A DNA stretch of 64,000 bases from Geosiphon pyriformis uo1. Its lineage: Eukaryota > Fungi > Glomeromycota. The DNA is taken from positions 558,001 to 622,000 of the forward strand of contig JAAOMT010000675.1 in NCBI GenBank assembly GCA_016748015.1, in the 5' to 3' direction. The position numbers and the translations under genes are program-made. The notes under the pieces were generated by a model. The model was not told the DNA's origin. It searched no databases and saw only the letters and a program-made list of their open reading frames with translations. Of the stretch, positions 3,138 through 28,681 are shown in pieces (position 1 is the stretch's first letter; every line of letters begins with the position of its first letter).

Positions 3138-3849
3138 TGTTACAGGATGGTTTTCTTGTTATATTTAATTGCTGATATCCCGCTTTAATTGCAATCAGTC
3201 TTTCGTGAGTTCCTCAATTCTATTTGTGTGATAATGTCACTGTTACACTGAAGGCTTTTTTTTTACTGTTGTGATGTAAGTTATTCTTTAATTCTTGATT
3301 GTTGTGTGTGTTTATGTACTTCTTCTCAAAGGCTGAACTGAAATCTACCCACTGTCTGGAGTCTTCTCTGAGGCTATCCTTGCAATTGCCTAATGTGTTT
3401 CTCTAATCTAGAAACACAGAATGTTAATGGTCTTTAGCGCTTTTTTAATTCTCACAATAAAGCTTTTATCAATTAGTAACAACATGAATAATCTTGATCA
3501 AGGATTATTCTTCCAAGGGATTCAGTTGATGAATAATAGTTTCATTCAATAAATAATACAAGTAAGTTTNNNNNNNNNNNNNNNNNNNNCCCAATATTAA
3601 AACTACTGTATATATACATGTTTGTAGTTCTACGAGAAAATACTTTCTTTTTGATATTTCAACCTGGTGTTTGCTGCTATCACCAGTTGGTGTTGGCTGC
3701 TATTGTGAACTGGTGCTTGCCACTATCACGAGATGGTGTTTGCTACTATGTTAATCATTACCTTTCTAAGATTATTATTGTGCTATATTATGATTGAATA
3801 GTTTGTATTATTTTTATGCTTCTTTTTGCTAAATTCTTAAACCGTAACA
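3138..3849 (-). repeat. 3' LTR of the Gypsy element (contains an N gap)
   Basis: TGTTACAGG...CCGTAACA; ~97% identical to 11859-12556; four internal ~23-bp repeats at ~3663-3750. Confidence 0.95.
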
Positions 3850-19429: not shown

Positions 19430-20210
19430 ATTTATTTATTATTTAATTATTGTTTTAAATATCATAAAAAAATTAATAATGTATATTTTTTTAAACAATA
19501 ATTTATTATTAAAAAATAATTTGTTTTGTGTATTCTTTAGTCTTAACAAGTTTTCTATGTCAATTATCTTAAAGACTTTAATGTATTTCAATAAAATTAA
19601 TTTTTTAAAGAGATTTAGTATGGCTTTTAGTAATAGATTTTTGAATAAACAAAACAAATTTATAGATTAAAAGACTTTTTATTACTAGAAAAGATTAAAT
19701 TCTAGAAAGCTTATATTTTTTTAGTTTGTTCTGATATTAAAATTTTTACATAATTCTAATCTTGTATTAATATCTTCTAATGTAATCTCTGAATTAGTAA
19801 ATATAAATGTTTTATTGATAAATAAGTTTTTAATTTTAAGAAAATACTTATATAAAATCTGGTTAAATTCAGTTAATATATACTAATAAGTTTTTAAAAA
19901 ATTTGGATTTTGTTGTAATTGTAGATAAGACTATTGTTTATTTTCTCGAAATAGATTTGGAAGTTAAAGTTAAAGTTTATAGATTGTTGTCTTTAATACT
20001 GGCTAAATTGCAAGTCATTACTCTTTTTCTAAAATACATACTTTTTTTTTGTGCTGTAATTATGTACTTAGTATTATTAGAGATTTTTGGTCTCTTTTTT
20101 TGAATGTTGTTAATATCAGTTTGCTGTTAATTTATGTTTTCTAAAAGCAATTGAGTCTTTAATAACTGAATTTATTTTCAAATTATCTTTTATAATTTGA
20201 ACTGCTGGGC
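19430..20210 (+). mobile_element. Eroded LINE ORF2 fragment (RNase H region)
   Basis: KVYRLLSLILAKLQVITLFL is a decayed GVxGLxSSTLAELQAIALAL. Confidence 0.6.
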
Positions 20211-20246
20211 TTATAAGTAAAATAACCAATTTTATACTAGTTACTT

Positions 20247-20440
20247 TGTATAGTTATATTGTAGTAAATATCAACTCTTTTTCAAAAATTGCTTATTTAG
20301 AAGCTTACTAAATTATGTATAGTTATTTTTACTGTAAAAATCAATTTTTTTTAGAAATTGTTTGTCTAAAAGCTTATTAAATTATGTATAATTACTTTGT
20401 TGTAAAAATTAACTCTTTTACAAGAATTTTGTTTATAGAT
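20247..20440. repeat. ~70-bp degenerate tandem repeat (about 2.7 copies)
   Basis: Recurring TGTATARTTA...AAMTCTTTT...AAGCTTAYTAAATTA units. Confidence 0.6.
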
Positions 20441-21109
20441 TATCCTAATGATTATGATAAAAAAAAAGTAAAAAATAAAAAAAAAGTAAAAAAAATGGAA
20501 TTTTGTTAAGAGAATCGTTTTTGGTCTAGGCCTGAAGTCACTAAAAAATTACTGAAATTGGTAGTTAATTAAATTTCAAAATGTTAGATTAAATTTTAGA
20601 GAATATTAAATATAATTAATTTCAAGAATTGGTTTTTAAAGTATATTTTTTTATTTTAAATTGTACTAATGAGGATAAATTTAAAGTAAAATATCTATGA
20701 TAAAATATATTTTTTCAAAAAAAAAAACTTTTTTTATATAACTTGTTATAATATTAGTTTATAAACTTGAATTTTTTTTTTGCTATTATTTTGATAAACT
20801 AAAATATATTTCGATAAACTACAAATTATTTTGATAGACTATTAACTATTTCAGTAAATTATTTATTATTTTGGCAAATTTCTACAAATTTTAACAATTT
20901 CTTAACTGTTACATAGTTTAGAGTATTGTGTAATTTGATTATCTTAACTTCTATTGTACAAATCAGATTATTAATTAAAATAACAATTTTTAATAATTTT
21001 GATTAAATAATAATAATATATACTAATTAATAATAAAAATTATAAAAGTAATTTTATGATAAATAATAACTAAAATTCTACTGATAATATCAAATAGCCA
21101 AATTTCTAT

Positions 21110-22310
21110 AGATACATACATATTAGAATTAGAGTCTTTAATTCTTGATTTTTACAATTGCTGTTGAATAGAAAAAAGACAAATTGTAAACTTGATTAGA
21201 AATAAAGATTTTTTAGTGGTTTGGTTAAAAGTTAAGAGACATTTAGGGATTTTAAACAATGTTTATGCTAATGTTTTAGTAAGTAAGACTGTATGTTTAT
21301 CTTTATTATTATTTAGCAATATGTATAAATGCTTTATTGAAGTTAATGATTTAATAATTTTTAATAATATTTATTATTTTGTTTATGATATTTATAGATT
21401 AGTAAATTATATCTGTTAAAAAGCTAGATCTGATTCTTAGATAATTAAAAGTTCCTTAATTTATAAGATTAATTAGATTTATATTATTATAGTTTAACAT
21501 CTAAATACACATATGTTTTTAGATTTTACTAATAAAATTTTAGCTGGTTTGCACACATATTTTATAAAAACAGTCTATAAAAAGTTGTCTATTATGGTCA
21601 AAAAAAGACTTTATAACAGAGATTATCTAAGCATTTTGTGTTTACAATATAAAAAAGTTAAGTTTTCTAATTACATATTTACATGTTTACAAAAAGTTAA
21701 TTCTTATAAGAAAATAATCTCTAATCAAGTTTTGTTTTGGAGGTCTTTAATTGAATTTTATGCTTTATTATCTTTTGTAAATGGAATTATTTTTAGTATG
21801 TTTGTTGAATATTAAATTATATATGTTTTTTTACAAAGACTTTATTTTTAAAAATTGATATAATAAAGCAATATAAGTATTTGATAACTATAAGGAGACT
21901 ATTTGTGTATTAGTTAATTTTGTACATAAATTGAGTAAATATCATTATTTTGTTTTGTGGGAGTTTAAGTTTAAATACAGAACCAACATAGAAAAATGTA
22001 AGTTGATTGATAATAATAGAAAAATATCTAGTGTTTCTTGCACTTCAAAGACAAAGTTGTTAAATAAAATAGTCAAATTAATTAGTATTAATAAGTCTTT
22101 TAGTATTAGTTTTGGTTTTTATAAGTCTTATTTGTTTTTTTTTAGGTCTAAATAAAGAGATTTTTGTTCATATAAGTGTATAGTGTTGTCTTAATTAATC
22201 TGAGTAATTGGTTATATGTAAAAAGAATATGAATTACATCTAGCTAGGACTCTTAGTTTTGGTTTTATATATTAAATAGTAATTAAACTGCACTTGTTAA
22301 AATAATATAA
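21110..22310 (+). mobile_element. Eroded 3' portion of a LINE with 3' UTR
   Basis: WLKVKRHLG, TYFIKTVYKKL, SFGFYKSYLFF remnants; family 3' UTR at ~22180-22300. Confidence 0.75.
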
Positions 22311-22469
22311 AAAAAATTAAATATAAAAATAACAATTAATAATAAAATAATTAATAAAAAAATTAAAATAGACAATTATATTAAAAAACAATTATTATAC
22401 AATTTAAAAAATTAATAATTATAAATTAAAAAAATTAAAAAAAATAGATTTTGCTAATTTATTATTAAT

Positions 22470-22760
22470 ATTTTTTTATTAAATATTTAATAAATATGGC
22501 TTAACTATTATTTAGAAGTTAGAAACAAATTAAGTATCTTAGTATTAAATATAGTTCATATGCTTTTTACATGTAATTAGCTATTTAAGCCAATTTAAAC
22601 TACATTATATTAATATACAGAAGAAAACTTACTTAAAAAAAACATTCTTTAAATTATATTAAACAAAATAACACTATAAAAAACTAATTTAACCAGTTAT
22701 TTAGCTGTTTTTAAGGAATTAGTTTTGATAATAACATCAAATTAAAAAATATTCTATTGT
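22470..22760 (-). mobile_element. 3' end fragment of a divergent LINE subfamily
   Basis: Reverse complement aligns with 47030-47300. Confidence 0.65.
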
Positions 22761-22799
22761 TAACAACAACTTAATTTGTTAAATTATTAAACATGTTAA

Positions 22800-24271
22800 T
22801 ATTTTTTATGTAACATTTTTTTTTAATAAAACCTATAAATTTACTACAGTATTTAATTAAGTTAAAAGTCAGTTTTGTTAATAATTATTTGGTAAATATT
22901 ATTAAAATTTTTTTAAATAATAAAATTTCTTTGGCAAACAACTTGTTTAATGCTTTTTATTTTTTTGGCTGTTTTTTAATATCTAAAATTTTGGAAAATT
23001 TCTATTACTTTAATGTGACTTGTTTTTTAAAGTGCTTAAGTATTGTCTTTGATAATAAGTTATTAAATAAACATAAATTAGTTATGAATTGAAAATTTTT
23101 TTATTATTAAAAAAAGTTAAGTTCAAAAAGTCTAGTACTATTGTAATTTAAGAAAACTTCAAAATATATAAATAATTTCTTTGTTAATTTTAATGAAATT
23201 ATTTTAATCTTTGATTGTTTTAATTTTTTATGCTTTGAAAAATTTGCAGATATTTAAGAATATTTGTATAAGTTGTAAATAAAAATAATTTATGTATATA
23301 TTAATAGTTTATTAAAAGGTTTAAGTACTATAGAAGTAATAAATAAAACAGTAGTTTATTTTTTTTATATTAAAATAAATATAAGTATTAAAGTTTATGA
23401 ATTGTCTTCTTTGATATTGTTTGAATTACAAACAATTATTTTGGCTTTAGAATATGTTTTTTTTTGTTTAGTAGTTTTGTATATAAACAGTTATATTATT
23501 ATAGATATGTATATTTCTAAGCTTAAACTTAATTTGTCTAATGTTCAGAATAAGTGTTAGGTAAAAAGACATTATATGACTAATTTGATTAAGTTTAAAA
23601 ACAGTTATATTAAGTAAATAAAAGCCAAAAGCCATTTAAAAATAACTGATAATAATTGAACAAATACTTTTGTATATAATATAATATATTCTGGTTTAAT
23701 TTTTTTTATTGATATTTGTTAAAAATTTATTATGGCTGATAATTTAATTATGTTGAACAATATTTATTATTTTATTTACAATATTTATTAAATTGTTTGT
23801 TGAATTTAATAAGAAGCAGATTTGAATATGAAAATTATAAACAGCTCATTTATTTGGAATATAGACTGAATTTATATTGTATTAGTTTAGTATTAAAATT
23901 TACATATGCTTTTTGAATTTACTAGCAAAATTTTAGTCACTTTCTATATATATTTAATAAAGATAGTTCATAAAAATTGTTAGTGATTATTAAAAAAAAA
24001 CTTTATAACACAAATTATTCAGGTGTTTTATGCTTAATATATGATAATATTAAGCTACTTGATCATATTTTTACTTGTTTAAAAGATGTTTTTATGTGCT
24101 CTAAAATTTTGTTTGGTTATGTTAAATTGTAAAAATTATTAATAAAAACTTGTTTCTTATTAATATTTGGTAATAAAAAAAAACTGTATTAGTAATAATT
24201 AATTTTGTTTGTTATTTAATTAAAAACATTATAATAAGTTGTGACTTTTTAGATCCAAGTTCAGAATAAAT
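22800..24271 (+). mobile_element. Eroded LINE ORF2 (RNase H to Zn-knuckle); left half of the copy split by the Sola element
   Basis: Decayed VYxxSL, ELQTI.LALE and DHIFTC motifs; reading frame FRSKFRIN|IKNYGLVD continues at 28381. Confidence 0.75.
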
Positions 24272-24327
24272 AGGATATGTTATAACAAAACCAAACAAAG
24301 TAAATATTCTATTATGTAACATAAATA
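24272..24327 (+). repeat. Left TIR (eroded)
   Basis: 46/56 match to the reverse complement of 28325-28380; all 10 differences are G>A or C>T. Confidence 0.9.
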
Positions 24328-24699
24328 AAAAGCTGATTTTATAATATGATTGTAAAATTGACTAATATAATTGATGATATTTTGAAAAGTAATAATAGTG
24401 CTTATTTATAACTTATAAACTTGTTAATTTTAATACTTACTTTATTATACCAAAATATGATAAATATAAATCATAACAAAATTAATATAAGATTATTTCT
24501 ATATAAAAAATATTAATATAAAACTAATTTACATTAAATCTATTATAGAATTCAAGAATTATAATATTATTAAAAGTATTATAAAAAAAGCCTAAAGAAA
24601 AAAATTACTCCATATATTTTTAAAATTAATGATACCAAAGTTTTTTAAAAATACTTAGATCAAAAAAAAATTACTTATAAAATTTACCAATATTATTTA

Positions 24700-25533
24700 T
24701 AGAAATTAGAAATTATAATAATAAGTAAAATAGCCAATTAAAAATAGACATAATAAAAAAAAGAATTTCAGAATTTTTTTTGGAGAATTACAGAATTTCA
24801 AAATTCTAGAATTTTAGAATTTTTGTTAAAAAAATTAAAGAATTTCAAAAAATCTTATATAATATAAATTATGTATATATAGTAAGAGTATTAAAAGCAA
24901 AAAATATATTTAAGACTCAGACAAAACAATAACTAGCAATAACTATTTATTCTATATCTCTCCTTTTAAAAGATAGTTTTCTATAACTTAAAGTAAAATT
25001 ACATTAATATTAATAAAAATATTTATTATCATCTAATCTATGTTATTATTACTTGATTAAAGAAAAATCAATTACTTCTATACTATTAATATTCTATGTT
25101 AATAAGATTCAATACTTAATCACATTAAACTAATAGCTCTTGATTATGGCTATTAATAGAATACTAATTTTTTATTTTTTTTTATTTTTATTTTTATTTT
25201 TTGTTTTGTTTCTTTGTTATTTATTAATTAATTAAAAAAATTAAGCACTAAATATTTGACATTAAAGATAGTTTGGTAAAAAACCTGAAAACAAAAGTAA
25301 AAAACTTAAAAATAATTTATTAAAAAAATATGACTGCCAAAATAAATTGGCTACTATGCTAAAGAAAAAAATTCACAAAAGAAACTATTAATTAAATCTC
25401 TGTCTATTATATAAAAGACTCAACCAAAACCTTCAAACTTCAAATCTTTAAAAATTACCAACATTTTTAGTTATTGAGCACCAAGTTATGAGTTTGTTAT
25501 TTGTTCTAACACCCTAAATAAGCATTTGTAATA
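24700..25533 (+). mobile_element. Eroded solo-LTR-like insertion inside the Sola element (left boundary approximate)
   Basis: Co-linear with 42140-42913 (AATAGCTCTTGAT, ACCAAGTTATGAGTTTGTTATTTG); ends TGTAATA versus TGTAACA. Confidence 0.7.
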
Positions 25534-25594
25534 TCAAGAAGAATAAAAAATAATGGCTTAATCTTATTTTTGTCATTGTTTTGCTTGTAACTTT

Positions 25595-26505
25595 TTAATT
25601 CTTTCTAAAATGTTTTTCTTGCACTGTTGTAATTTTAACTATTAAAACAACTAAGATAAAAATTAGTGATCTACTAATTATTATTCAAAAAACTCAACTG
25701 TTTTTTTCTTGTATTTGCAAAAATTTTAGTTTTTTCTTTAACTGGTTATTTGTCATTTCTAAGACAGCAATGGCAAAGTCTCCATTTTTGAGATTAGTAG
25801 CATTAATCTCAATATGATAAATATTGGGAGCTTCGAGATAATTGTTATAAGCAAATTTTGGTAATACATAAGAGCTGTTGGGAATAATTTCACTAGTTTT
25901 CTCAATTAAAAGGAGATGGTCATCAATATATAAATCAAAATTGGGATAATGTTCTTTAATATAATCTCATCTTGTAGGTTGAACTAATTCTTGTTCTAAA
26001 ACAACCTTAGTTTCAATAAAATCAACCTTGGCTTGTGGAAATTGTCCCCAGGTTTTGTCAAATTTTTTCTTTTTCCCCACTGGATAACCTTTCGCATGTT
26101 TTTTTTTTTAAAGACTGTCACGATAATTAATTCACTAATTAGTTCTTCTTTTAAAGCTTGCAATAATTCTTGGACAATAGACAAAAAAGGGGAACGATCA
26201 TAAAAAGAATGCTGTTCACTATAATGCTGGGTTTCCTTTTCATTTCTTATTCTTTTTAATTCTCCTGAAGCTAATCTTTGAATATTTGTCTTCTCGTTAG
26301 GATCATCTTTATCAATATAAGATCATTCTCATGAATTTATTACATCAGCATTAATCATAAAACCATGCCCTTTAGGACTATGAGTAGGTTTACTAGATTG
26401 TAAACATTCATCTCAATCAGCAATGATTTTTAATTTTTTTCCTTTGAGTTTGACTTGTTCTTTGATAAAAGTGTAAAGGAAATCAATTTCGTTTTGATTA
26501 TTCAT
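25595..26505 (-). pseudogene. Code-4 cargo gene: HAD-superfamily, 5'(3')-deoxyribonucleotidase (NT5C)-like protein with C-terminal TM anchor, ~303 aa, one frameshift in an A11 run
   Basis: Manual translation with TGA=W: IIADWDECL (motif I), LIIVT (II), FDLYIDD (IV), YVLPKFAYN, hydrophobic WVFWIIISRSLIFILVVLIV tail; no introns; TAA stop. Confidence 0.75.
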
Positions 26506-26556
26506 ATTTCTACAGCTTTGGTAATATAAATATGTTTTATCTATTGGCAGTGTAGA

Positions 26557-28031
26557 TTAGATTGGTTCTGGACAAGTGATATCTTTGAATTCATCCCGGA
26601 CAAATGGACGAATATTGTGATAAAGGTATTCTTGCCTTCTGTAATCCAAAGGAGGAGGGCTTAGTACTAGGATTGAAAAGGAATTAATTTCTTTGGTAAT
26701 TTCAGAAACACTTGCTTTTTTAGTTTTTAACAAATTAAATTCTGTATAAGTACCATTAGCAACCAGCTGAGCTTTGACAATGCCAGGGTTAGCTGCTTCA
26801 AATAGAAAATGCTGATACTTTTGTAAACCACTCAATTTCTTAAAGAAAATTCCCAACACGGAATTAAGATCTAAGTATTGAAAGCCTTTGCCGTTTTCAT
26901 AGCACTGAGCTTTGTTTAATCCCGCTGTGCTTGATTTTTTCACAACTTCAACAATATGATCCACACAATCTACGGTTGTTTTTCGATAAAGCTTTTTAAT
27001 CAATCCAAAACTACCATCACACTTAAATTTGGTATGTCCAGGTACCATGAAATTTAATTTGATACTTTCGTAATAACCGCAGATTATTAAATACAGATAA
27101 AATCAAATGGTAGCATTATTTTTATTTTGACCACCCGCATTGTCACAAGTAATCTTCAAATGTTTTTCACCTTTATTCAATTTCTTTATTCCATCGAAGA
27201 CCAGGCTCAGTGTACCATTAGGACCTTTGCCTATTATTTCGCCTTCATCGAGAACGTAATTAATTTGTTCGCGTACTGCTTCATTTTGAATCCCAAATAA
27301 ATGCACTTTACGCGGACTGAGATAATAAATCTTACTTACCTGTTGATCAGAATGTGGAACGTGAACATTTTGTGCTCAATCATAACTGTAATGAGCAGTA
27401 GCGTCAACGTTACAATAATCAGCTTTAACTCCTGTCACAAGATAATTCTCGTCTACTAATTTTCTCTGTTGTTCTGCTAATTTCGTATTTTTGTTGTAAT
27501 AGTTTCTCTCTAATTTAGCCTTAACTAAATGTTCTTTGTACTTTTTTAGTAAATCTTTCGTTTCTTCTTCCTTACGAGCATTATACTGTAAGCCATTCCG
27601 AAAATGTTGGCACGTGTCACATAAATCCGTTCGCGGACTCATGATTTGAATATAAGGNNNNNNNNNNNNNNNNNNNNTGTCGCTAAGTGATTTCTAATGT
27701 TTTCGAAGTGAGTGCGACCAATTCCTAACATGTTGAGATACGTTTTCTGACAAAGAGGCGTATTGCGATCTCAGTAGTAAAAAGTTCTTTTATTAGTACG
27801 CATTTTCTTTTTAAGACGTCGGCTGGCAGTTATTTCTCCACCATTCATTGCTTTCAGCTGGGCCATTAAAAATATGTCTTGTTCGGATCTAGAGAGAGCG
27901 TGAAATGCCTCACGTACTTCAGCAAACTTCTCTCTCGGAATCATTTTTGAACAACCACATTTACAACCTATCTCCAGGAAACGTATTGCTTTTTCGTATT
28001 CGGTTGAACCGTTATCAACATAATCTTTCAT
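26557..28031 (-). CDS. Sola2-like DDD transposase, continuous under code 4 (spans one N gap)
   Basis: GCKCGC, PRTDLCDTC, HYSYD(W)AQ, CDNAGGQNKNN, MVPGHTKFKCDGSFGLIK; the only internal stops are three TGA codons; TAA terminator. Confidence 0.87.
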
Positions 28032-28324
28032 ATACGGTTAATCCTATATATAAATTTTTATCGTTTTGTAAAATTTTCACACCATATTTGGCAAGTTTTA
28101 TTGATTTGATAGTTTTCTGCCAGTGAGAAATTACTATAAATCAGAACAATAACGACTATTGTTCCATTCTTATTGCACTGTCTATGCCCTTTTGCGTTTT
28201 TCTTTTTCGCCTTTTTAGCATAACAGGGGATTAGTAGATGTGACAAAAAAAGACAACATACCGTAAAGGTGGATTTAATGTAAATTAGTTTCATATTAAT
28301 ATTTTTTATATAGAGATAATCCTA

Positions 28325-28380
28325 TATTTATGTCACATAATAGAATGTTCACTTTGTCTGGTTTTGTTGCAGCATGCCCC
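28325..28380 (-). repeat. Right TIR (GC-intact)
   Basis: Ends ...GCAGCATGCCCC; GRG/CYC termini as in Sola2. Confidence 0.9.
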
Positions 28381-28681
28381 AAATATAAAGAATTATGGCC
28401 TTGTTGATAATACAGAGGCCTGTCTAATTTTATGTTAGCTAGGGTCATTCATTTGCTTGGTATTATTGAATCTTTTGCTGTCAGTTTTGGTTTGCATAGA
28501 GCTTGTTTATTTTTTTTAAGTGTAGACAATAGTATAAGAGTTTATGTTGGTGTGTAGTGTTGCCTTGATTGGCCCGAATGGCCAGTCACGTGTAGTAAGC
28601 GCATGAGTCACGTTTAGTTGGAATCACTTAGTTTGCTTCTGTATACTAGATAGTAGTTGGGCTGCACTCGTTAATAAAAAA

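Follow-up and report, generated by a model that had tools for sequence, protein, structure and literature searches.

A Sola-like transposon written in genetic code 4 in the nuclear genome of Geosiphon pyriformis points to mobile-element traffic between endobacterium and host

The movement of DNA from an endosymbiont into its host is usually viewed as a passive leakage of random fragments. NUMTs and the Wolbachia inserts of insects and nematodes are of this kind, being arbitrary fragments joined by end-joining. DNA transposons of the Sola superfamily, reportedly described by Bao and colleagues in 2009, have DDD-type transposases. In dictyostelids, Sola2 elements have 4-bp flanks of the form AWWT, and Sola2-Fanzor chimeras have been described (PMC3627910). 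Among fungi, a published survey recorded Sola1 and Sola3, not Sola2, from Rhizophagus. Gene exchange between MRE endobacteria and their Glomeromycotina hosts, with transfer in both directions, is documented in several reports (Naito 2015; Torres-Cortes 2015; Sun 2019), and such exchange also figures in later work (Longley 2023). A search of the literature returned no paper on code-4 elements in Glomeromycotina nuclei, nor any on DUF7869.

The window analyzed here is a stretch of 64,000 nucleotides of Geosiphon pyriformis (contig JAAOMT010000675.1, positions 558,001 to 622,000). Its positions 24272-28380 correspond to one member of a multi-copy family of DDD DNA transposons (Pfam DUF7869, Sola-like); the features of this copy are collected in Table 1. 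The terminal repeats and flanking AAAT described in an earlier note on this DNA are both present: AAAT stands on either side, and the outer arms of the inverted repeat (24266-24327 and 28325-28386) are 62 nt long and 81% complementary, with mismatches that are nearly all G>A or C>T and lie on the left arm. These AT-rich flanks are of the AWWT kind seen in Sola2, and ATAT, AAAT or ATTT was found beside the conserved end in 11 of the 13 family copies with flank shown, the opposite end being imprecisely defined. The family terminus begins GGG, to be set beside the GRG termini of Sola2. This terminus (GGGGCATGC..., read on the other strand of the 24272-24327 repeat) forms the end of 12 copies in Geosiphon and of 16 among the 80 from metagenomes, in all of which the repeat was found at the cargo side only (pattern searches, up to 9 mismatches); the window copy has a terminus of the GGGGCATGC type at both ends, but mutation has changed the left one to AGGATATG. 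Upstream of the transposase, pattern searches of the 12 Geosiphon and 80 metagenome loci with at most 9 mismatches detected no full repeat, and inverted-repeat searches of three loci revealed no second terminal repeat. The transposase-proximal repeat recurs in locus L110, where it precedes a small ORF with no transposase after it, and likewise in L116, whose contig ends sooner. In most copies, homology among unrelated loci runs out some 30-40 nt ahead of the ATG; in "long-form" copies it extends further upstream. Most copies carry the full terminal repeat at one end only; the want of a symmetric second repeat, like the use of code 4, sets the family apart from Sola.

Table 1. Features of the transposon copy and its flanks (positions in the window)
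Feature	Position	Strand	Remarks
AAAT, left candidate 4-bp TSD	24268..24271	.	read directly; matches 28381-28384
Terminal repeat, cargo-distal end, with GC>AT transitions	24272..24327	+	end shared with other copies
Subterminal motif TATAGGATTATC...ATGAAACTAATTTACAT	24481..24540	+	inverted partner 28272-28331, 93% complementary; motif also in other copies
Nested unrelated repeat, outside the family	24691..25534	.	element positions 420-1263 match many genome loci at ~80%
Cargo gene, code 4, 6 TGA + 1 TGG, no TAA/TAG	25595..26505	-	shorter than in other copies
DDD transposase (DUF7869), code 4	26557..28031	-	stop TAA 26557-26559, start ATG 28029-28031
In-frame TGA (NATI-W-FY)	27103..27105	-	F or W in relatives; metagenome 40 TGA / 37 TGG
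In-frame TGA (YSYD-W-AQ)	27376..27378	-	adjoins first catalytic Asp; metagenome 63 TGA / 6 TGG
Assembly gap, 20 N	27658..27677	.	hides ~300 bp (~100 codons) of transposase
In-frame TGA (FYY-W-DR)	27771..27773	-	relatives F, Y, I or V; TGA in 2/3 MRE copies
Short leader (..TATATAGGATTAACCGTAT)	28032..28057	-	common to all copies; homology to most others starts here
Remnant of small upstream ORF (MKLIYIKST...)	28058..28294	-	ORF intact in other long-form copies
Terminal repeat, transposase-proximal end	28325..28380	-	upstream of a transposase in window copy only, among loci searched
AAAT, right candidate TSD	28381..28384	.	read directly

The window copy is a genuine insertion in nuclear repeat DNA, with host sequence on both sides. 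A LINE-like ORF is collinear across it, reaching amino acid 346 at 24111 and resuming with amino acid 454 at 28414, and is in one frame once the element and one TSD are removed; the rejoining of the LINE frame that had been claimed thus stands, although about 130 nt of the LINE are absent near the site and no empty paralogous site, that is, no locus with both flanks adjacent, was found. The right flank is itself a repeat, the other copies of which begin matching 30-70 nt from the insertion. A public contig joining 24050 to 28483 was considered as an empty site and was not counted, its match on one side being just 23 nt long. At the left junction, a public contig covers 24000-24306 with zero differences and so bridges the boundary; at the right junction, the contig available (28357-28579) takes in no more than 24 nt of the element. 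Elsewhere, copies of the family lie on contigs of up to 119 kb bearing eukaryotic genes, and a C-terminal piece of the transposase has 93 matches in this one genome, fragments included, which is many for repeated transfer between compartments. Fungal mitochondria also read TGA as tryptophan, so a NUMT-like piece, or endobacterial or mitochondrial DNA mis-joined to nuclear contigs, might be suspected here, the more so given the N gap within the element and the reported contamination of Glomeromycotina assemblies with MRE sequence (Longley 2023). The gap, however, is internal and away from the junctions, and the left junction recurs in the public contig. The family also lies between eukaryotic genes in other assemblies and, for Ambispora, in single-nucleus data, and decayed copies with TAA or TAG are scattered across large contigs of the same Geosiphon genome. 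As to a mitochondrial origin in particular, the neighbors of the sister clade described below are bacterial, not mitochondrial. An artefact of this sort is hardly credible.

The earlier note had joined several ORF fragments into one transposase. Its two sides at the assembly gap are out of frame with each other as assembled, and no single record spans the gap, which hides part of the gene. Every other copy has about 300 bp at this position that continue the same ORF, and public contigs from three runs reach 93-211 nt into the gap from 27678, encoding the expected ..NGIIPRVHGN..; the two sides therefore belong to one gene. The 484 visible codons contain three TGA, no TGG and no TAA or TAG, in agreement with the claim that TGA (27771-27773, 27376-27378 and 27103-27105) provides the only internal stops. 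The further claim that the gene has no TGG codon holds for the visible part; the hidden part includes two tryptophan positions in other copies, one of which is TGG in every copy translated. That the TGA codons occupy aromatic sites was confirmed at 27376-27378, where the ten closest aligned homologues of standard code all have W and copy C457 has TGG, and at 27103-27105. The protein matches Pfam DUF7869 (E = 4e-9), and blocks around three acidic residues (YDW, CDN and CDG/CDS) are kept in the code-4 clade and in the 11 relatives displayed, the most distant of which have about 35% identity. By alignment, these appear to be the DDD residues of an RNase H-like core, as in the Sola superfamily, with which the family would share its type of transposase. 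The family is accordingly termed Sola-like, a placement made from the DDD residues and from DUF7869, the one Pfam match; the Sola2 subgroup named in the earlier note is a candidate assignment. Among standard-code proteins, the closest relatives (about 41% identity) are encoded in the nuclei of arbuscular mycorrhizal fungi.

Reading TGA as tryptophan is required to keep the transposase and cargo genes open; that is, they are written in genetic code 4, as had been proposed from the window alone. Profile and database searches used stop-free pieces, and translations with TGA read through were kept to local scripts. In four Geosiphon copies that are 20-30% apart, the transposase ORFs run for 529-598 codons with 3-6 TGA, 2-3 TGG and no TAA or TAG, and the cargo ORFs (about 300 codons) have up to 8 TGA with 0 TGG; the host ORFs flanking these copies have 0 TGA and up to 9 TGG. 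Soil metagenomes supplied a further 80 loci (35,806 codons, 179 TGA, 115 TGG), among them 30 ORFs of about full length (567-604 codons), none with TAA or TAG, while TAA is the most frequent stop in the other frames. TGA exchanges with TGG at the same five tryptophan positions in Geosiphon, in Ambispora and in the 80 soil-metagenome contigs, the TGA/TGG counts at the metagenome loci being 25/14, 15/28, 23/25, 63/6 and 40/37, and at one of the five, W is present in 18 of 19 relatives with an aligned residue.

Transposon copies are under strong purifying selection. Comparisons of nuclear copies with each other, and of Geosiphon with Ambispora copies, give dN/dS of 0.05-0.17 at dS from 0.16 to >1. 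The closest copies (96-97% identical) have synonymous to non-synonymous changes of 18:21, a dN/dS roughly estimated at 0.4-0.5, which is as expected if neutral decay follows insertion. These data contradict the proposal of a dead nuclear family, in which the TGAs would be nonsense mutations of a non-autonomous master copy amplified in trans by a standard-code relative. Three TGAs are common to a subfamily of 85-92% identity, and standard-code relatives do occur in mycorrhizal fungi, both of which accord with such a history. It is nonetheless extremely improbable, given the low dN/dS at such depth, the TGA/TGG swaps that run in both directions at five sites, the want of TAA and TAG in the 30 ORFs of about full length despite the prevalence of TAA in other frames, and the distance of the closest standard-code transposase (about 41% identical).

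The cargo gene of the window copy has a single frameshift at a homopolymer run near 26094-26105. Together, its transposase and cargo have 9 TGA and 1 TGG, and a recount of the earlier tally, including the absence of TAA and TAG, gave identical figures. Cargo GC3 is 0.17-0.29, near the composition of MRE, and distinct cargo modules are paired with distinct transposase subfamilies. The family thus resembles the Sola2-Fanzor chimeras in having a conserved transposase half and a swappable cargo half. The suggestion that the cargo is a captured bacterial gene found no backing, as stop-free pieces of the window-type cargo (C457 homologue) gave no credible Pfam match and nothing above threshold. The composition of the cargo bears in addition on whether the fungus itself might decode TGA as tryptophan, through a suppressor tRNA, by efficient near-cognate readthrough or by A-to-I editing that turns UGA into UGG; the element would then be a nuclear transposon of the ordinary, autonomous kind. 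Some ascomycetes are known to correct stops by A-to-I editing, TGA stands at tryptophan or aromatic positions only, and all contexts of the window's clade are nuclear. Known fungal editing, however, prefers U before the edited A and hence UAG rather than UGA, and leaky readthrough cannot account for a 300-codon cargo with up to 8 TGA and 0 TGG. Moreover, host ORFs beside the elements lack in-frame TGA, no tRNA gene, and so no suppressor tRNA carried by the element, was found in the seven loci scanned, and the bacterial sister clade has the same TGA use. With GC3 so close to that of MRE as well, decoding by the fungus is very improbable. A look for transcripts found this DNA in no RNA run, and the one run first taken for RNA is probably of DNA.

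That sister clade resides in genuine MRE genomes. Relatives 54-57% identical, with TGA at the same tryptophan sites, were found in three MRE contexts: in a Candidatus Moeniiplasma MAG between restriction-modification genes, on a contig with ribosomal protein, PNPase and AIG1 genes, and adjoining Cas9/Cas1/Cas2. In all three, the transposase is split at the same run of A, a shared frameshift that the nuclear-context clade does not have. The IS1 and IS3 families of bacterial insertion sequences use programmed frameshifting, to which the split at this A run bears a putative resemblance. MRE contigs also bear host-type AIG1, LRR and kinase genes. In the phylogeny called for by the earlier note, the MRE clade and the nuclear code-4 clade form a group with 97% support, and standard-code fungal proteins branch outside it; the nuclear clade mixes host genera, and an Ambispora copy has 88% DNA identity to the window's subfamily.

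None of the contexts in which the window's clade was found is bacterial, the MRE-context copies being a separate, frameshifted clade. The long contigs of the window's clade that were examined have eukaryotic genes, and among 29 metagenome upstream flanks with a judgeable long ORF, none was MRE-like, the TGA-rich ORFs typical of the MRE contigs being absent from all of them. Disruption by the elements of the kinase genes that lie upstream of them was considered and rejected, as no C-terminal kinase halves lay downstream. Two pattern scans of bacterial species genomes, among which public MRE genomes are few, found no close relative, the only two relatives (36-37%) being in MAGs of doubtful binning. 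With a bacterial SSU model, no MRE 16S gene was found in this Geosiphon assembly; the model matched four places (393-536 bits, all about 1.8 kb, three in large contigs), which are taken for eukaryotic or organellar rRNA. The idea that a eukaryote-type transposon colonized the endobacterium thus gains from the fungal nuclear relatives and the MRE sister clade and is not borne out by the flanks of the window's own clade. All contexts of that clade being eukaryotic, its endobacterial reservoir is an inference, as are the direction of transfer and insertion by a bacterium-made transposase.

On this evidence, the window copy is probably an untranslatable, decaying nuclear integrant of an endobacterium-borne, code-4, Sola-like DDD transposon. 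The lineage would have its ancestry in nuclear transposons of arbuscular mycorrhizal fungi and would have entered MRE, where TGA encodes tryptophan and tryptophan codons could drift to TGA; copies would then have inserted repeatedly in nuclei of Geosiphon, Ambispora, Diversispora and Gigaspora. A nuclear copy could not make its proteins, because the host reads TGA as stop, and decay would follow. The window copy has marks of decay in its frameshifted and shortened cargo, its nested repeat (of very high word depth) and the GC>AT changes at its left end. The integrity of the ORFs across copies would reflect selection where TGA is tryptophan, most likely in MRE cells, and nuclear copies would therefore be recent arrivals from a diverse live pool. 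The many copies point to repeated mobile-element traffic between endobacterium and host nucleus. It is possible, if somewhat doubtful, that this traffic is an active cross-kingdom shuttle, in which endobacterium-made transposase now inserts the element in host chromosomes and bacteria may take nuclear copies up again.

A full two-way shuttle is unlikely. In it, nuclear copies would be a stage of the life cycle rather than dead ends: endobacteria would acquire host DNA containing the element and translate the code-4 genes on it, and the element, alone or complexed with transposase, would go back to nuclei. Passage through bacteria would expose nuclear copies to selection each time, which suits a clade whose sampled contexts are all nuclear and whose ORFs are yet unbroken, with purifying selection acting on them. 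Transfer of genes from host to MRE is documented, and cargo modules are mixed among transposase subfamilies, as recombination in MRE would be expected to bring about. None of the steps has been observed, however; DNA must move both ways, and the proposal has all the gaps of an endobacterium-borne origin plus one extra.

An endobacterium-borne origin of nuclear integrants resembles known transfers in part. The partners are those of the documented MRE/Glomeromycotina gene exchange, and the host-type genes on MRE contigs fit with it, but the reported cases are of single genes, and here a whole selected code-4 element stands at dozens of nuclear sites in several hosts. Likewise, NUMTs and Wolbachia inserts are DNA of a cytoplasmic genome with another translation system, untranslatable and decaying in the nucleus; here, in contrast, a discrete element with a constant terminus and AWWT flanks is found at many sites.

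Here, in contrast to leaked random fragments, a discrete transposon that its host cannot read and that selection maintains is found in no fewer than four genera of early-diverging mycorrhizal fungi, at dozens of nuclear sites, and in many soil metagenomes. Such copies are invisible to standard-code annotation, and the cleaning of fungal assemblies could take them for contaminating bacterial DNA. Since the difference in code labels where each copy was last selected, the direction, rate and age of transfers become directly measurable. If a bacterial-made transposase performs the insertion, this would be a natural system in which a eukaryotic host has DNA written into its chromosomes by its bacterium, with an enzyme from the host's own lineage. 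If the active shuttle is true, this would be a mobile element living across two genomes with different codes and spreading among fungal lineages with their bacteria.

The three in-frame TGA codons attributed to the transposase by the earlier note (27773, 27378 and 27105) are present, and its visible codons include no TGG, TAA or TAG. The other two frames of the same strand hold 41 TGA, 50 TAA and 19 TAG, so that nine TGA in the two genes, without any other stop, are not an outcome of decay. The transposase had been joined from four ORF fragments across a run of N. As assembled, the sides of this gap are out of frame with each other, and the alignment of every other copy breaks at the same point, where all of them carry ~300 bp. 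Translated from these copies, those ~100 codons keep the ORF going (..HLATNGIIPRVHGN....KLWHQLTPYIQIM..), and public contigs from three runs enter the gap from 27678 by 93-211 nt, exactly matching the expected sequence. The gap is therefore an unassembled piece of one gene and the joining stands, but a single record spanning the gap was not found. The window contains five gaps of exactly 20 N each (at 3570, 4209, 5102, 12294 and 27658); since at least the last of these stands for ~300 bp, the assembly's gap lengths cannot be read as size estimates. An unrelated repeat nested in the element has many genomic copies at ~80% identity and very high word depth in a public run.

Coordinates of the element's features (window numbering) and of loci from other sequences and metagenomes (L-numbers)
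Feature	Location	Strand	Remarks
Transposase	ATG at 28031 to TAA at 26557	minus	484 visible codons
Gap in transposase	27658-27677
Transposase part matched by run X3 contigs	26560-28081		at least 95% identity
Cargo gene	26505..25595	minus	6 TGA, 1 TGG; one frameshift at a homopolymer run
Nested unrelated repeat	24691-25534		~840 bp, between subterminal motif and cargo gene end
Cargo examples	L056:3762-4703, L060:3821-5425, L073:11442-12842, L080:7600-9300		all code 4
Standard-code ORFs upstream of elements, examples	L111:390-2696, L136:317-1654, L155:1558-2970, L055:2-1492, L051:3-1596
Full forward terminal repeat past an element's end	L110:5474-6339, L116:6715-7485		~335 nt past the end
Repeat encoding TnpB/Fanzor-like protein	L075:3-911, L092:1-799	minus	adjoins two elements
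MRE-context transposases	L071:9234-10990, L076:9100-10747, L077:9075-10759		frameshift-split
Relatives in bacterial-filed MAG contigs	L069:6001-6798, L070:154-969		36-37% identical

Geosiphon pyriformis is a relative of arbuscular mycorrhizal fungi and a known host of Mollicutes-related endobacteria (MRE). Within its 128.3-Mb assembly of 792 contigs, the element DNA has 97 matches and the C-terminal 181 residues of the transposase have 93, ranging from 96% identity without stops to ~35% with many TAA and TAG; one family member is the Geosiphon protein G9A89_020281. Copies on contigs C457, C648, C633 and C702 differ by 20-30% and have TGA-as-Trp transposase ORFs of 529-598 codons (the C633 length taking in a frameshifted tail) with 3-6 TGA and 2-3 TGG, and their downstream genes are likewise open in code 4, with up to 8 TGA and no TGG. 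No TGA occurs in host ORFs adjoining elements, which contain up to 9 TGG. TGA and TGG are exchanged at identical sites between Geosiphon copies: at the Trp following the first catalytic Asp, the window copy has TGA and C457 has TGG, and at the next Trp site the window copy has TGA as against TGG in C633, C648 and C702.

Copies elsewhere have the same character. A pattern scan of metagenomes recovered 80 loci of the window's clade, chiefly from soil, with 179 TGA and 115 TGG in 35,806 codons; 30 ORFs, of 567-604 codons, are approximately full length, and TGA/TGG counts at five Trp positions are 25/14, 15/28, 23/25, 63/6 and 40/37. A contig of Ambispora leptoticha carries a 587-codon ORF with 2 TGA and 3 TGG, its DNA 88% identical to the window's subfamily. 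Alignment with standard-code relatives shows conserved D, D, D blocks. At the KLW position, 18 of the 19 relatives that have a residue carry Trp. The ten closest homologues, among them all six named proteins of mycorrhizal fungi, have Trp at the site next to the catalytic Asp, and the remaining positions hold F, Y or W, or vary. A share of the element's sampled 31-letter words is present in rhizosphere and soil metagenome runs from many studies (X3-X21), and this, with the matching contigs of run X3, indicates that the transposon family is common in soils.

Selection was estimated under code 4 by the Nei-Gojobori method. In all pairs with unsaturated dS, dN/dS is 0.05-0.17, including C633 and C702 within Geosiphon (dS 0.59, dN/dS 0.06) and Ambispora against the window copy (dS 0.65, dN/dS 0.06). 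Synonymous and non-synonymous changes number 18:21 in the three closest copies (96-97%) and stand at ~2:1 in copies of 90-92%, the pattern expected from a short neutral phase after insertion. Mere nuclear decay of the family, or its amplification in trans, cannot yield such dN/dS values and change counts.

Relatives in endobacterial contexts were found. A protein search placed I3273_02745, from a Candidatus Moeniiplasma glomeromycotorum MAG, at 57% identity to the C-terminal piece of the transposase; it lies on a 124.8-kb contig with restriction-modification genes on either side. A second relative is on a 39-kb contig with ribosomal protein, PNPase, ThiI, tRNA synthetase and AIG1 genes, and a third on a 15-kb contig with Cas9, Cas1 and Cas2. 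In the long ORFs of these contigs TGA far outnumbers TGG, and the transposases have TGA at the same Trp sites. All three MRE-context copies are split at the same A run (..KKKN stop, then KKKF/L.. in another frame), L076 having one further frameshift; the split could be a programmed frameshift as in bacterial insertion sequences, or a shared defect. In a maximum likelihood tree of 51 proteins, a group with 97% support unites the MRE-context clade (94%) with the nuclear-context code-4 clade (99%), and the standard-code proteins of Rhizophagus and Gigaspora fall outside it. Sequences from Geosiphon, Ambispora, Diversispora and Gigaspora are interleaved within the nuclear-context clade. The wider family has ~3,500 members, and the nearest standard-code proteins are ~41% identical. 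Relatives at 36-37% identity in bacterial-filed MAG contigs (one labelled Stappiaceae, 'chromosome 72') could reflect eukaryotic DNA binned in error, or else genuine Sola-like elements of bacteria.

All judged contexts of the window's own clade are eukaryotic, and no bacterial copy was found among them. HLH, Mob1, LSM, malate synthase and Crinkler genes are found on contigs of 84, 119 and 26 kb, and codon usage of the MRE type is absent from all 29 metagenome flanks that include a long ORF. In most loci whose sequence reaches far enough upstream, a standard-code ORF in the same orientation precedes the element by 100-700 nt. These ORFs form four families; three, together with the L051 upstream ORFs, are fungal-type protein kinases (Pkinase or Pkinase_fungal), some with DUF6826, and the fourth has no Pfam match. 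Since these upstream ORFs are more diverged than the elements, their position suggests target preference rather than linkage.

At the window's insertion site, a LINE-like ORF taken from a paralogous repeat aligns as far as 24111 and resumes at 28414, with strand and order unchanged. AAAT was read directly on both flanks. The LINE frame does rejoin, as had been claimed, once the element and one AAAT are removed, but ~130 nt of LINE sequence are absent there. One public contig is identical over 24000-24306 across the left junction and a second spans 28357-28579 on the right; the single-copy cargo part has a word depth within the flank range, a contig-based measure of limited worth. No empty site was found among the genome's repeat copies. 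G+C is 29.6% in the window overall, and 14-20% over 20000-25400, a stretch made up of the left flank and the element's left part, versus 30-44% rightward. Within the left 430 nt of the window copy, 19 of its 31 private changes are G>A or C>T, and the low-G+C region looks like the product of regional GC-to-AT mutation.

The terminal inverted repeats were confirmed (outer pair 62 nt at 81%, inner pair at 93%), and the ends are asymmetric across copies. Every copy reaching the cargo side ends in GGGGCATGC... followed by ATAT, AAAT or ATTT; the full transposase-side repeat occurs, among the loci searched, in the window copy only. Homology in other copies begins at a common leader ~30-40 nt before the ATG or, in 'long-form' copies, at a hairpin-like subterminal motif ahead of a small ORF (MKLIYIKSTMEPK...), of which the window copy retains just the start. 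The AWWT flanks are in keeping with those described for Sola2 (PMC3627910), a candidate subgroup for this element. At L110 and L116, after a full forward repeat come the subterminal motif and an intact 95-aa small ORF; no transposase follows in L110, and the L116 contig ends sooner. This arrangement suggests that a second, non-autonomous element was inserted next to the first. Cargo varies by copy: some have the window's gene type, others a coiled-coil protein together with a zinc-ribbon/coiled-coil protein, and others LRR proteins; as one cargo type pairs with different transposase subfamilies, the modules have been recombined. The TnpB/Fanzor-like protein encoded beside two elements has GTDPG... 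and a C-terminal zinc-ribbon pattern, recalling the published Sola2-Fanzor chimeras.

Host-side recoding, a dead nuclear family and an artefact are each contradicted by several results. Codon evidence, selection and the bacterial sister clade together make a code-4 history of the element close to certain. The window copy is a nuclear integrant that its host, reading TGA as stop, cannot translate. The constancy of terminus and flanks argues that a transposase, not end-joining, carried out the insertion; this transposase may have been bacterial-made, and nuclear copies may return to bacteria. Published work documents for the endobacteria diversity within single hosts, mobile elements and an exchange of genes with the fungus. 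An endobacterial population is the most economical source of copies that are intact, selected and diverse.
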